A stretch of 63,667 nt of DNA, filler included, from Choristocarpus tenellus KU-1152 (lineage: Eukaryota > Protista > Phaeophyceae), in assembly GCA_964200185.2 (NCBI GenBank). It is 12 parts of 12 records of this genome, joined end to end, with 100 filler letters (N's around TTAATTAATTAA, not from the genome) between each part and the next. Parts side by side here need not be neighbours in the genome. Positions count along the whole stretch, not along the records: positions 57,263 to 59,800 come from CAXNAD020026949.1; 11 more parts are not named here. One strand, given 5' to 3'. Under the pieces are notes generated by a model. The model worked only from the letters and a program-made list of their open reading frames with translations, ran no database searches and had not been told where the DNA came from. Below, in pieces: positions 6,370-59,900 of the stretch. Positions within the stretch are counted from its first letter, which is position 1. Each line of letters opens with the position of its first letter. The translations under genes and the position numbers were made by a program.

Positions 6370-9274
6370 ATTTTGTTGGGTGTTTTTGAATGATAAATAT
6401 ATGTGAGATAAATGTGTGTTAACTTCACGTCTCGTCTGTATGTGTTCCACGGTTCATCGAGTGATTTTTTTGAGGTTAGGGTTATGGATTTTGTAGTGCG
6501 GTCTGTTCTCAGTTAACGCATTTGAGTTAAGAGAGGGAATATGATATGTTACAGCAGGGTGTACCCTATTTCAGTCTTTATTTGATGATGCAAAACACCA
6601 TGTATGTTGTTATGTTACGGTGAAATTATACACAGCATATACAGACCGTCCCATTAGAAGAGTGATTTCATCTTTTTGCATCATGAGTGAGTGCCCACTG
6701 CTGCTGCACCCCCTGCAGTGATCACAACGTGCCAAAAGGTTAAGGTGTATGGGAGAAGAGTCGTGTCCACTGTTGTGTAGAAGTAGAATCCTGCTCATTC
6801 TGTATCTTTTAAATAATAGTGATATTGTTACATCCGTTCCTCTCGACGCTGGAGTATTTTGTTACTGTTGTTGTCATTTGATACATATTATTGTACATCC
6901 TTGTAACTAATAAAAAATATTTCGGAACAAAGAATAAGAAATGATCAGTATGACTGTTTTTAAAAAAAACATACATGCAAGACTTGACTATTGCTAAGAA
7001 TGAGCCTCCATCTCTTGTACTTTTCACATGACTATATTTCATGGTGAACGGAGTTTTGCAATGCACTTTTATTTGTATGTGTGTGTGCCCCCAATATTGC
7101 CAACAATGATTATTCCTAGTTGTATTTTCTTCTTTGCATTGCAATGTATAATTATCTTGTTATTGAAATAGTAAAGCTGTTCTGATATCAGCCCTAACCC
7201 TCGATTGAGAGTACTCCAGAACGTTCCTTAGTATACTGTGATGTGCATCTATTATATTTGTAATAGTATTGACTGCCATAGTAATCAAAGCCAAACCGCT
7301 GATAGTTCTCAAAAATCGCTATTCTCTCTCTTTCCATCTCTGGTGCTTGATTTTTTTTATTTTTTGCTGACAAGTCGTATTCTTTGAAAAAAATCATGTG
7401 TGCAACAATGACAAGTGAAACAAGTAGTACGTCTCTGTCTATATATGCAAGAACACAATATTATTTTCACCTCGATTTTTTATTAATTGATGTAATAATG
7501 TTCTTTTGTATGCTTTTGAATTGATGAGGAGATGTTGCTGCGATGCTTGTGTTTAGAGTGGAGTACAGGTTTTTAAGTTTCTCCTTTTGGGGGATTCTGG
7601 CAAAGAGGCGGTAGAGGCAGGCACAAATGTATTACTAATATCATTACTTATATATTAATAGTAGCAGTATTGGATGCATTTTCTTTTTAAATGGGGAGAG
7701 CAAGAATATATATTATATATATATGGAAATGATGGTGAATATGATGAAGAATCTAATAGTTTAATCTTGAAGGATTTTAAAGGGAAACGTGACATCTGAG
7801 CGCATCCACATGCATCACCCAACACACACACCCTCACATACCTGTATTGTGTCTTTGTGGTGAATTCTATTGGATTGATATCATCTTGTAATCGTGTATG
7901 GTAATTGATGTGTCATTTCAATTTTTTTGAAGCATGTGCAGGGTCAGGACTCCTTCCATCTCTCCCTCGAAGATGCACCACAGTATTTGTGCTGTTTCTA
8001 TGCCCCCACCCTCCTTGCTATCATGCGAGAACCTTCTTTTTTCTGGAAATATCAATAACATACTTACATTCTTCCCGGCAAGACATACTCATTCATTTGT
8101 GTATGAGAATGTGAACGATTGGTCTCATGCCTTTCGTCAACACACTATATTTTATTTTACTATACTTCGTTGCCGACAGATTCCTTGCTCTAGCGAGGTC
8201 AGGCTGGAAGGATTCAAGAACTGATTGTCCAAGGCCACCATCGACGCCAAAATGATTGAATCGAGGGGGTCTGAGAAGGGCATGGTCATGGACAAGATTG
8301 GCACCAAAATTAAGGACATTGATATCAAGTCCCGGCTAGTGAGCGTTGATTTGGGGGAGCGGGGGAGAAGTGTATGTTATAGAGCTGAATCGAATGTGTT
8401 GGGATTAAGAATGAGCTATTATTGTGTTGTGACCTTTAGGTGAGATACTTCATGTTCTACTGCAGTAGTGTCGTAAGTGCTTGAAGCACAAACATCACTC
8501 ATTGTCCGTCAGACTTGTACTTGTACTTGACACCTCAAGGGCAAAACAAACAGGGGTGGAGCTCCTTGCTTCTCCATGTACTAATCAGTAAACACACACA
8601 CCGCCTGTTGGTACATTCACATTATCGAGTTTTTGTTTTTGTTGTGTATATTTTTGTTTCCAAACATAAGTCCCAACCAAAGGTGGTTTGGAAACACAGC
8701 GAGACTAGAAGTTGCTGGATGCAGGGTAGGTAAAGCTACCTCGGCAGACGGAGGGATTCTTTTGTGGCGAGGAAGGCAGAGTGCAGCATGCTAGATTCCA
8801 TATCAAACAGGTAACTAGAAGGTCGAGGGGTGGGTTCTAGAAAAATATATTTTTTGCTCAAAGAATCTATGGGGGAGGGGGGGGGTCTACACCAGGNNNN
8901 NNNNNNNNNNNNNNNNNNNNNNNNNNNNNNNNNNNNNNNNTTAATTAATTAANNNNNNNNNNNNNNNNNNNNNNNNNNNNNNNNNNNNNNNNNNNNGGGG
9001 TACTGGGGTTCAAACGTGTGCCCTTCCCATCCTCCCTGGTGTAGCCCCCCCCCCCCCCCCCTCAGATACTTTGGGTCATTTCAATCTATTTCACCTAACT
9101 GTATCGATTGATTGACTACCTACACAATAATAAATATTACAGTAAAGCAACAATTTTGCAGGTCAAAAGACAAGAGTTGATATGATGTGAGTGGAAGCTA
9201 CTACTGATAGGTTACCCTCCTGTGAGTGTTCACTACATATCTACCAAGCAGTGCATAGTTTTTAATGGTCCCAC

Positions 9275-56650: not shown

Positions 56651-59062
56651 GATCGTACAGATGACTTTATCATAAAGCCTCTTCATGATGCCATATATAT
56701 ATTATTATGGCCCTGTGACATTTTTCAGATTTGTCAGGGATAGAGCCAAACCAATATCATAAGGATTTTTGGAAAAGAATAAGTTAAGTTGTAAATGTGA
56801 AAGATATCTCCCCAAGAATCATTTATTAGATAATCTAGTTATACTAAAACATTTCCATAAAGGTTAGCAATGTATTCATTATATAACATAACTCATACCA
56901 TTCGAGCCTGACAATTTCATAAGCCGGAAAAAACAAATCCAATGTGCACAGTACAAATCAATTTCCGACAAATCAGTGCCGTTCCTGTCATTGATCTGAG
57001 TTACGCATGTTGAGGTACATCCCCGCAATTCAAACATTTAGGAGTCAACTCTTTCATTTGTGTATCCCAATCTGTTGTACACATTAATGGGTCAAAGTAT
57101 CTGGGGGGGGGTGTCGGTGTCCGTTTTTCACCCTTTTTTCGATTTTCACTTTTTGGTGTGATNNNNNNNNNNNNNNNNNNNNNNNNNNNNNNNNNNNNNN
57201 NNNNNNTTAATTAATTAANNNNNNNNNNNNNNNNNNNNNNNNNNNNNNNNNNNNNNNNNNNNAGATCCAGCATACTTGACGACTTGTACATCAGGAGTCC
57301 TATACGTACATCAGTATCATCTATAAGCCCGTAGATTGGAGCTATACATCCTGTGGGGGAAAGCTTTCGGGAGCGCCTGCAACATAGATCCCCTCCCACC
57401 CCCAGATACTCTGGGCCCTTAACCAGCGCCCTCCATAAAGGGGGTAAAAGGACTTCTGAGGCAGCGTCCAACAATGGGCTGTCCACGAAGATAAAAATTG
57501 TCGACATTGGCAGGTACATCAGCTATATCTTTGGCTTTGCTACTGCATAGATTTCTTCAACAGCCAAGCTCACTAGTTCAGACCTTAAGGGTGGTACAAA
57601 CATTAGAGCTTGTCGGTTGATGAATCCCTTGCCACCTCGCCGCGTCTTACGATTGGAAGCAACATAATCAAGGTGACGGACCGATACCGATATGATACGG
57701 TTATTGGATTCCGTTGGCAATGCTAGGTGCGCCCTCACGTTCCAAATGATTCCGTGATCACCCTGATGTGTAATAACGGAAGTTAAGCCCAAGACACCTC
57801 ATTTCTCCTCAATGACCAAAGTACAAACGGAACCCTCTCCCCTTGGATACGCTGGAAAAAGTATAGACATGTGCAAGTCTAATTATCGCTGCAAATATCA
57901 AAAGACGCTCACCATCTATAATAAAAAAACTTCGTCCATTTGTCCCAAGAATCCTGGTGCTGTGCCACCCCCCTCCTTTACCTCTATTTCCAGTGCGCGC
58001 AATCACATCCACTATAATAAAGAGCTTATCCTTAGGGGAGAGTGCTGCACCACAGTGTGGAACTTCTCCCAGAAAGCATCCTTAGATAGTTCTAAGGCGT
58101 CTTCTGTTGGGGCACTCAAGAAAGCCTTTACTTCCACTCAAATAGCTCAACGCAAAAAATCCCACCTTTTCTTGTCTTTTGGAGCCCAATCACATTGCAT
58201 TGTAAACCCATGCCCGTCACATAAAGGCCACCGCATGACCCACTCCGTTCTTGCATTTCTCTCAGCCATGGTTCGGATATTCCACCTATCCATAGTCAAG
58301 TAACTCTTTGTTGCTGGATATATGGCACTTCAGAGTAGATGTGTTACAGGCGAATAGTGCGAGTATTTTTTCCCGCGCTTTAAACGGCATGGAGGTGAGC
58401 TTTGAGGGCCTGTAACAGATGATGTGCATGGAAGGGGATAAACCCTCGATCTCTTTCAAAAATATTTTTTCTCTCCCAGTTCCTAGCTTATCTGAAGAAT
58501 ACCCCATACGTGCCTCACTTCACACGCCGAGGGGCTACCAGATTCACGCCTCGACTCCAACATCTACCTTCTTCAAGACGCCGAATCTGGTGGATAATCG
58601 TGGAACGGCGTTCTGCAAGGAAACTATGTTGGTTACATTTTCCGCATGATGGTACGACGTCTGAAGGGGACTGTGCGTTCGTGAGGCTTATCACCGTCAT
58701 CCCCCCAAACCCATCTATGCCGTATATGTTACATGGTGAATTGTTTACACATCATTGTTGTTTTGTACATTGGTCTCAGGTCCCAAATCCAGAACATATG
58801 ATGGAAAGGTCGATAATGCTTGGCATAAACAATACACACATACACTACTTGACATATTGAGTATGATAACTCATGTGGAAAGCATGTTTGTCTGTTGTTA
58901 TACCGTTATGGCCATATGTCATATGCTGTTATACCGTTGTACCGATTGAGGTTCCTTGTCAAGCATCCATGATTCCACTGGCGGACCTTCCGTCAGAGTG
59001 AAACCATGGAATCTCTTCGCGAGACCAATCCCACAGACTTGGGACAGTTCGTCATTCAGAGT

Positions 59063-59510
59063 TGTCACACATGGAAGATCCACTTTGCTCTTACGTCTTG
59101 ACTTGAAGTCATGAAGTCCTTCTTAGAAGATGCTCAAGACTCCTAGATTTGCACTTATCCAACCTTAACCTCGTACCCTCGGTTACGGTTCGTCTTTGTT
59201 CGTCAGGTCCGTCTTGCCCAGTGATTCTCTTCACCACCCTTGCCTGTGTGAACCACGCCGCCACAGAATCACACAATTCACATTGGCGACACCGGTGAGA
59301 TTCGAACTCACGCGTGCGAAGCACACAAACTTAGCAGGCTTGAGCCCTTCTTAGAAGATGCTCATGACTCCTAGATTTGCACTTGTCCAACCTTAACCTC
59401 GTACCCTCGGTTACGGTTCATCTTTGTTCGTCTGGTCCCTCTTGCCCAGTGATTCTCTTCACTACCCTTGCCTGTGTGAACCACGCCGCCACAGAATCGC
59501 ACGATTCACA
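59063..59510 (+). mobile_element. LTR (59063-59282), extended tRNA-derived PBS (59284-59345), 5'-truncated LTR (59346-59510)
   Basis: TGT...ACA LTR of about 220 bp followed by T-TGG. A ~165-bp direct repeat with about 8 substitutions ends at the same TTCACA. Confidence 0.8.
59284..59342 (-). pseudogene. Reverse-transcribed 3' portion of mature tRNA-Ser(GCT), including CCA
   Basis: Reverse complement folds as CAAGC-CTGCTAA-GTTTG, GTGC-TTC-GCAC variable arm, GTGAG-TTCGAAT-CTCAC, CGGTGTC-G-CCA. D-arm and 5' acceptor strand are absent. Confidence 0.9.
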
Positions 59511-59900
59511 CTCATAATAATATAACTATAACACCTTCACACATTTGGAAAAAGTCAACCGTACATATTGAACGCAAAACAAAAACTAAAAAATATGCTC
59601 TCACTCCTTCTACATATTATCTTAAGTAAAAATGTGAAATTTTGTTTTGCTCACGAATTCTGGATGATTATTATTATTATTATTATTATTTTGCACATTC
59701 CTATTTTCTTATTTTCCTCTATCCTCTATTCCCCATTTGATGACCAACCAGTGCAAATGCCCTTTGTCACTGATTGCCAGCCATCCCATTCTATGACCAA
59801 NNNNNNNNNNNNNNNNNNNNNNNNNNNNNNNNNNNNNNNNNNNNTTAATTAATTAANNNNNNNNNNNNNNNNNNNNNNNNNNNNNNNNNNNNNNNNNNNN

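Follow-up and report, generated by a model that had tools for sequence, protein, structure and literature searches.

In the normal scheme of reverse transcription in retroviruses and LTR elements, the plus strand starts at the polypurine tract, copies U3, R and U5 and then the first 18 nt of the attached tRNA primer, and halts before the modified base m1A58, which primer tRNAs, including tRNA-Ser, carry (PMC13191261). Minor stops have been found in vitro at positions 55 and 54 and at ms2t6A37, and unmodified tRNA is copied up to its 5' end (PMC13191261). When the stop at positions 58 and 54 is lacking, plus-strand synthesis enters the tRNA further; in TRMT6-mutant cells it passes position 54, and the product is described as not complementary once transferred and as unable to integrate (PMC8599865). 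A circular DNA of murine leukemia virus (MLV) with a near-complete tRNA copy between its LTRs (Colicelli and Goff 1986, J Virol 57:674, as described in PMC12220202) has been explained, according to that description, by a primer that had stayed on the minus strand and then served the plus strand as template. HIV 2-LTR junctions, too, can hold letters of the primer-binding site (PBS) or of the tRNA primer (PMC5618025). Primer read-through is known, then, from test-tube reactions, from cells without m1A58 and from unintegrated circles, and has there been deemed a dead end.

Here we describe a locus of Choristocarpus tenellus KU-1152 that is a chromosomal variant of this phenomenon known from unintegrated retroviral DNA. 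It was found in a stretch of 63,667 nucleotides, filler included, in which 12 parts of the genome are joined end to end (the window, to which all positions refer), and is most likely an old, inert LTR-retrotransposon remnant holding a 59-letter DNA copy of a tRNA-Ser primer: a complete LTR, the primer copy and the last part of a second LTR, enclosed by one short target-site duplication. We hypothesize that this composite is a by-product of LTR-retrotransposon reverse transcription, in which the primer was over-copied, the growing strand switched template and the product was integrated as one piece, a reading to which we assign a probability of roughly 55%.

The closest described systems each share some features with the locus and lack others. 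As far as the Colicelli and Goff circle is described in the source cited above, it is alike in its order (U5 end, tRNA copy with CCA beside U5, another LTR) and in its explanation by a retained primer copied by the plus strand; that circle, however, is an unintegrated DNA of a mutant virus in which a non-cognate tRNA-Gly is nearly fully copied between two whole LTRs, whereas the composite is chromosomal, has a target-site duplication, holds a copy that ends at nucleotide 27, and has a second LTR without its first 241 bp. The extended plus-strand strong-stop DNA of HIV-1, seen where m1A58 is absent or bypassed, is alike in that the plus strand passes the 18-nt PBS (PMC8599865; PMC13191261), and stops further on, at other modified positions, have been documented in vitro (PMC13191261). 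The HIV-1 read-through products are described as dead ends unfit for integration (PMC8599865), while here such a product seemingly gained a second LTR end and was integrated. The junctions of 2-LTR circles also run from a U5 end through primer-derived letters into an LTR, but they hold short insertions, are episomal, arise by host end-joining and have no target-site duplication (PMC5618025). With solo LTRs and TRIM elements the locus has in common a high-copy LTR bounded by TG and CA, a target-site duplication and the lack of a coding region; a solo LTR, by contrast, has neither a PBS nor part of a second LTR, and in a TRIM the two arms are equal, with a polypurine tract and a conserved internal domain.

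With its target-site duplication, a chromosomal copy would demonstrate that a read-through product can gain two working LTR ends and integrate in the germ line, and the locus also records the distance over which reverse transcriptase (RT) copied a natural tRNA. Taken alone, the locus is a molecular fossil and not a new kind of element, and it would carry more weight if the family has left a series of such products.

Layout of the composite and its LTR family

The composite is located in the piece of the window from 57263 to 59800 (CAXNAD020026949.1), and its features are given on the plus strand. Its first component is a complete LTR of 409 bp with TGTG...CACA ends (58874-59282), whose borders are set by a rise in contig depth, loose contig ends, a contig that crosses the border, and the target-site duplication. 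Contigs (Logan) from three public runs of one study were placed on the piece. Summed depth in one of the runs (X1) is about 14 at 57603-57942 and 58453-58792, the single-copy flank; summed contig depth reaches 5 × 10⁴ to 3 × 10⁵ over 58878-59557, the high stretch extending from about 58873 to about 59512, and is about 3 in the downstream flank (59558-59642), which is at or under the single-copy level. Loose contig ends gather at 58873 (before the LTR) and 59282 (behind it), and an X1 contig matching 58344-58901 with zero differences crosses from the flank into the LTR. The LTR begins with TGTGG at 58874, ends with TTCACA at 59282 and again at 59510, and has a 4-nt terminal inverted repeat. The initial annotation had set the LTR start at 59063, a position that yields no target-site duplication and lies well inside the high-depth stretch, since depth is already high from 58878; the true start is 58874. 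The LTR family numbers thousands of copies, and letters private to the window, for example at 58998, occur at roughly single-copy depth. Since a high-copy LTR is here flanked by single-copy DNA on both sides, we conclude that no internal retroelement region adjoins the composite.

Behind the LTR, direct reading gives a 1-nt spacer (T, 59283), which the initial annotation had passed over in placing TGG directly after the terminal CA. The spacer leads to an 18-nt canonical PBS (59284-59301), which hand mapping identifies as the complement of nucleotides 76-59 of tRNA-Ser(GCU), CCA included. The copy then continues past the usual stop as the complement of nucleotides 58-27 (59302-59342; hand mapping, gene comparison and Rfam), an extension covering the remainder of the T arm, the variable arm and the entire anticodon arm. 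Repeat comparison shows that what follows is the final 168 bp of a second LTR, which lacks 241 bp at its 5' side and ends in CACA (59343-59510): a repeat search of the piece aligns 59115-59282 with 59343-59510 as a direct repeat of 168 nt with 9 differences. This repeat, bracketing a 59-nt antisense copy of tRNA-Ser(GCU), confirms the arrangement of LTR, tRNA cDNA and second LTR that had first drawn attention to the locus, and puts at 9/168 (5.4%) the divergence that had been estimated as about 5%.

The differences between the two LTR parts are spread over both. Compared with the family majority, copy 1 has a private letter at 59205 and at 59275 and copy 2 at 59420; the T at 59117 is likewise a change private to copy 1. 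The majority letter sides now with one part and now with the other, and CpG-to-CpA changes make up three of the nine differences, several of the differences being private changes of this type in one part or the other when set against the majority letters. To judge from these letters, the pattern is that of two once-identical sequences decaying in place to about 5%. At this rate about one or two decay changes are to be expected within the 59-nt tRNA copy, and single odd letters there should therefore be read with caution.

The entire composite is bracketed by CTCA, found by direct reading at 58870-58873, at the end of a single-copy upstream flank, and at 59511-59514; by chance, 0.8% of positions in the piece show a 4-mer match at that fixed offset. 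A 5-bp duplication, ACTCA, was considered and rejected, for it needs the terminal A of the second LTR to be counted twice; that A is LTR sequence in copy 1, and we therefore take the duplication as 4 bp. The start of U3 and the end of U5 are the two ends that integrase uses. Since one CTCA pair brackets all of the composite, the duplication points to insertion by integrase of a single DNA that carried a U3 start and a U5 end.

No retroelement coding region is seen, as a comparison of the 10 ORFs of the piece with Pfam gave no convincing family, gag and pol included; the best matches, two at E 0.1, are under the cut-off and neither is related to retroelements. A search for contigs encoding the 163-aa ORF found no record, and a search for protein homologues of the ORF that spans U5, the PBS and the tRNA copy found no candidate. 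The motif formed by LTR end and PBS and the 18-nt PBS itself had zero matches in viral-contig scans, and the PBS motif was absent from ten metagenome loci.

The LTR family is itself variable. Contig joints within 58961-59410 (for example from 58961 to 59206 and from 58978 to 59063) reveal sub-families with internal deletions; one common variant diverges in reading after 59103, and four contigs carry a common purine-rich alternative sequence before 59063. At another locus, an X1 contig joint from 59512 to 58873 places an LTR end, about 3 letters and an LTR start in succession, a head-to-tail joint that resembles either the junction of a 2-LTR circle or two abutting insertions.

Identity and end of the tRNA copy

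Read on the minus strand, 59284-59342 is the 3' two-thirds of a class II tRNA-Ser(GCU), from the CCA end to nucleotide 27. The anticodon arm (CAAGC/CTGCTAA/GTTTG) has a 5-bp stem with one G-U pair and a 7-nt loop that holds the anticodon GCT; the variable arm is 14 nt long with a 4-bp stem; the T arm has the stem GTGAG/CTCAC and the loop TTCGAAT; and the acceptor strand CGGTGTC is followed by the discriminator G and then CCA. In this mapping 59284 corresponds to A76, 59302 to A58, 59332 to A37, 59337 to C32 and 59342 to C27, and the canonical A, A and C are present at tRNA positions 58, 37 and 32. Taken by itself, the stretch fits the Rfam tRNA model as a tRNA cut at its 5' end (24 bits, E 0.0013, model positions 25-71), with a score below the gathering score of 29, as is to be expected of a partial tRNA; on the whole piece Rfam gives just a weak tmRNA-clan echo over the T arm, and the tRNA model appears once the stretch is isolated. 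ARAGORN finds no tRNA gene in the piece because nucleotides 1-26 are absent. The stretch thus differs from a functional tRNA gene in two respects, as it lacks the 5' acceptor strand and the D arm (nt 1-26) and includes CCA.

Eukaryotic nuclear tRNA genes do not encode CCA, and eukaryotic Pol III genes end in T-run trailers. For comparison, metagenome contigs were scanned for exact matches to the T arm and acceptor strand, which gave ten loci with twelve genes. All twelve are eukaryote-type tRNA-Ser(GCT) genes whose T arm and acceptor strand are identical to the window copy (25/25); every one has G at position 26, none encodes CCA, and a T-rich stretch or T-run trails nearly all of them. They differ from the window copy in the anticodon stem and the variable arm and therefore belong to other organisms. 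The insert is accordingly read as copied from a mature tRNA-Ser(GCU) of cytosolic type that had its CCA tail, and it lies in the place and orientation of a PBS. Two of the metagenome contigs carry their gene twice: in L002 the two copies (1496-1577 and 8919-9000) are inverted, have identical 12-nt flanks and lie near both contig ends, and in L007 they are in tandem (109-190 and 272-353), 163 nt apart.

Where the tRNA copy ends depends on which letters at the junction belong to the LTR. Letters at the family level were taken only from a 30-nt loose-end summary aligned to the window, in which other copies of the family read ..GAAGCCCC.. after 59103. Given that reading, A59343, G59344 and C59345 are ordinary LTR letters, and the simplest junction would be 59342|59343, where tRNA nucleotide 27 passes straight into LTR with zero shared letters. 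If the native tRNA reads G23-G24-C25 like the metagenome genes, up to three further letters (GCC) could be ambiguous, and the crossover could in that case lie anywhere from 59342 to 59346. The initial annotation had seen in the T at position 26 a possible fossil of a misincorporation; a miscopied G26 at A59343 has been set aside as unnecessary, as A59343-C59345 can be the letters that the LTR family has there.

Proposed origin and competing explanations

The core of the original proposal, that the primer was copied far past 18 nt and then joined to a second LTR, stands as the best reading and is strengthened by the CTCA duplication, while the LTR boundary and the misincorporation proposed with it are unsupported. 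In the course of events that we envisage, plus-strand strong-stop DNA would have started at the polypurine tract, copied U3, R and U5, and then entered the tRNA still on the minus strand, where it would have failed to halt at A58 and reached nucleotide 27; it may have stopped there either ahead of m2,2G26 or where the template ended, at the 5' terminus of a nicked tRNA. The 3' end would then have shifted onto LTR minus-strand DNA and run off at the U5 end. In one version of this step it would have landed on the 3' end of free minus-strand strong-stop DNA: 59343 would then be the first letter of R, the 168 bp would be R plus U5, and the partial LTR may mark the U3/R border. This version is so far unsupported, because no TATA-like motif is seen ahead of 59115. 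In a second version, synthesis would have been re-primed on the full minus strand, at a site within the LTR, with the heteroduplex resolved after integration. Either way the outcome would be a mini-DNA with both integrase-competent ends, the TG of U3 and the CA of U5, which, after completion of its second strand or as a heteroduplex with the full minus strand, may have been inserted with a 4-bp duplication, whereupon both LTR parts would have diverged by about 5%.

In most cytosolic tRNAs of eukaryotes the G at position 26 is the RT-blocking modified base m2,2G. A stall before m2,2G26 is a plausible cause of the end at nucleotide 27, since such a block leaves just that end point. Eukaryotic tRNA-Ser(GCU) also carries m3C32 and t6A37 (PMC8373065), and the copy has the correct letters at A58, A37 and C32, all of which would have been passed before nucleotide 27. 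A fully modified tRNA would not be expected to allow such error-free passage, which suggests a hypomodified primer or another cause of the end point; it is possible that the primer was under-modified, that RT passes these sites without error, or that the end is the 5' end of a nicked tRNA.

Several other histories could leave a structure of this kind. The one that survives best, though we consider it unlikely, is deletion after integration: the element, whose integration produced the CTCA duplication, would have been full-length and have had in its leader a primer copy of at least 59 nt, stemming from a previous read-through that had become fixed in its lineage, and an illegitimate deletion would later have removed everything from tRNA nucleotide 27 to a point 241 bp inside the 3' LTR. 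Such a history predicts the identical final structure and the target-site duplication; old elements often have deletions that involve little microhomology or none, and many deletion variants of the LTR appear among the contig joints. It requires two rare events, however, and the break exactly at nucleotide 27 would be a matter of chance. Moreover, the depth bin at 59303-59342 is far shallower than the LTR bins, which indicates that the extended tRNA copy is not general to the family, and other joints stop at different tRNA positions.

That the composite is an artefact of assembly, in which a wrong path through a high-copy repeat fused pieces of different loci, seems improbable. The contig is short, the LTR occurs in thousands of copies, and none of the listed contigs spans the composite or its internal junctions at 59282/59283 and 59342/59343, Logan contigs breaking within the repeat. 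An assembler can only output junction letters that are present in some reads, however; the flanks carry the matching CTCA, with its 0.8% chance of coincidence, and each LTR part has private changes of its own.

The initial annotation had raised a further option, a TRIM-like non-autonomous element amplified as a unit, with the primer copy as its internal domain. The unit is indeed short, with a PBS beside its first repeat, and its LTR family is high copy. Its arms are unequal, though (409 and 168 nt), and the second arm has no polypurine tract ahead of it, direct reading finding no purine run upstream of 59343, which together make a TRIM quite improbable; the bin with the tRNA extension is also shallow compared with the LTR, and two other tRNA-bearing joints break elsewhere. 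Very improbable, finally, is an origin at the DNA level, with a genomic tRNA-Ser gene or a tRNA-derived SINE fragment trapped between two LTR insertions: some LTR elements do target tRNA genes, and a native gene followed in the genome by CCAATGTG would fit, but the copy has CCA, absent from the 12 native-type genes with their T-run trailers, it starts 1 nt past the LTR end in PBS orientation, one target-site duplication encloses the whole composite, and the 5' third of the tRNA including the A box is missing, with no gene found by ARAGORN.

Further candidate products and neighbouring repeats

Read-through followed by a template switch, which we prefer as the origin of the composite, may have occurred more than once in this family. 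The joint table holds two X1 joints that lie in the tRNA copy past the 18-nt PBS, both at about single-copy depth and both known from their joint coordinates only. The first runs from 59329 to 59239 with 3 ambiguous letters, which corresponds to tRNA end points 40-37 and a landing 44 nt before the LTR end; the second, from 59336 to 58924 in inverted orientation, corresponds to an end point at 33, beside C32. These joints hint at further loci of the same kind and are best treated as a lead. Their end points (33 and 40-37) are compatible with stops before m3C32 and t6A37, and fit 3' tRNA halves from a cut in the anticodon loop equally well. It is a tentative and rather doubtful suggestion that the LTR family repeatedly made and integrated mini-DNAs of LTR, primer copy and partial LTR, with ends at 27, 33 and about 38, each just 3' of a hard-stop modification (m2,2G26, m3C32 and t6A37). 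If so, the genome would be a natural archive of plus-strand read-through in vivo and of the modification state of the primer; and if more copies end beside modified bases, they would offer a way to ask from sequence alone where primer modifications stop RT in vivo.

Other repeats occur in the same piece. Two high-copy stretches within otherwise single-copy DNA, 57263-57432 (summed depth about 9 × 10⁴) and 58283-58452 (about 3 × 10⁴), are unrelated to the LTR by repeat search and are probably fragments of other repeats. At 59728-59800, running off the end of the piece, summed depth is about 3 × 10⁵ and many contig joints step back by 53-56 nt; this stretch resembles a satellite whose units would be about 53-56 nt long, with little over one unit present in the piece, and it is not reported by Tandem Repeats Finder within the piece. 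Between this stretch and the composite, the AT-rich single-copy DNA downstream of the composite contains a perfect (ATT)8 microsatellite at 59667-59690.
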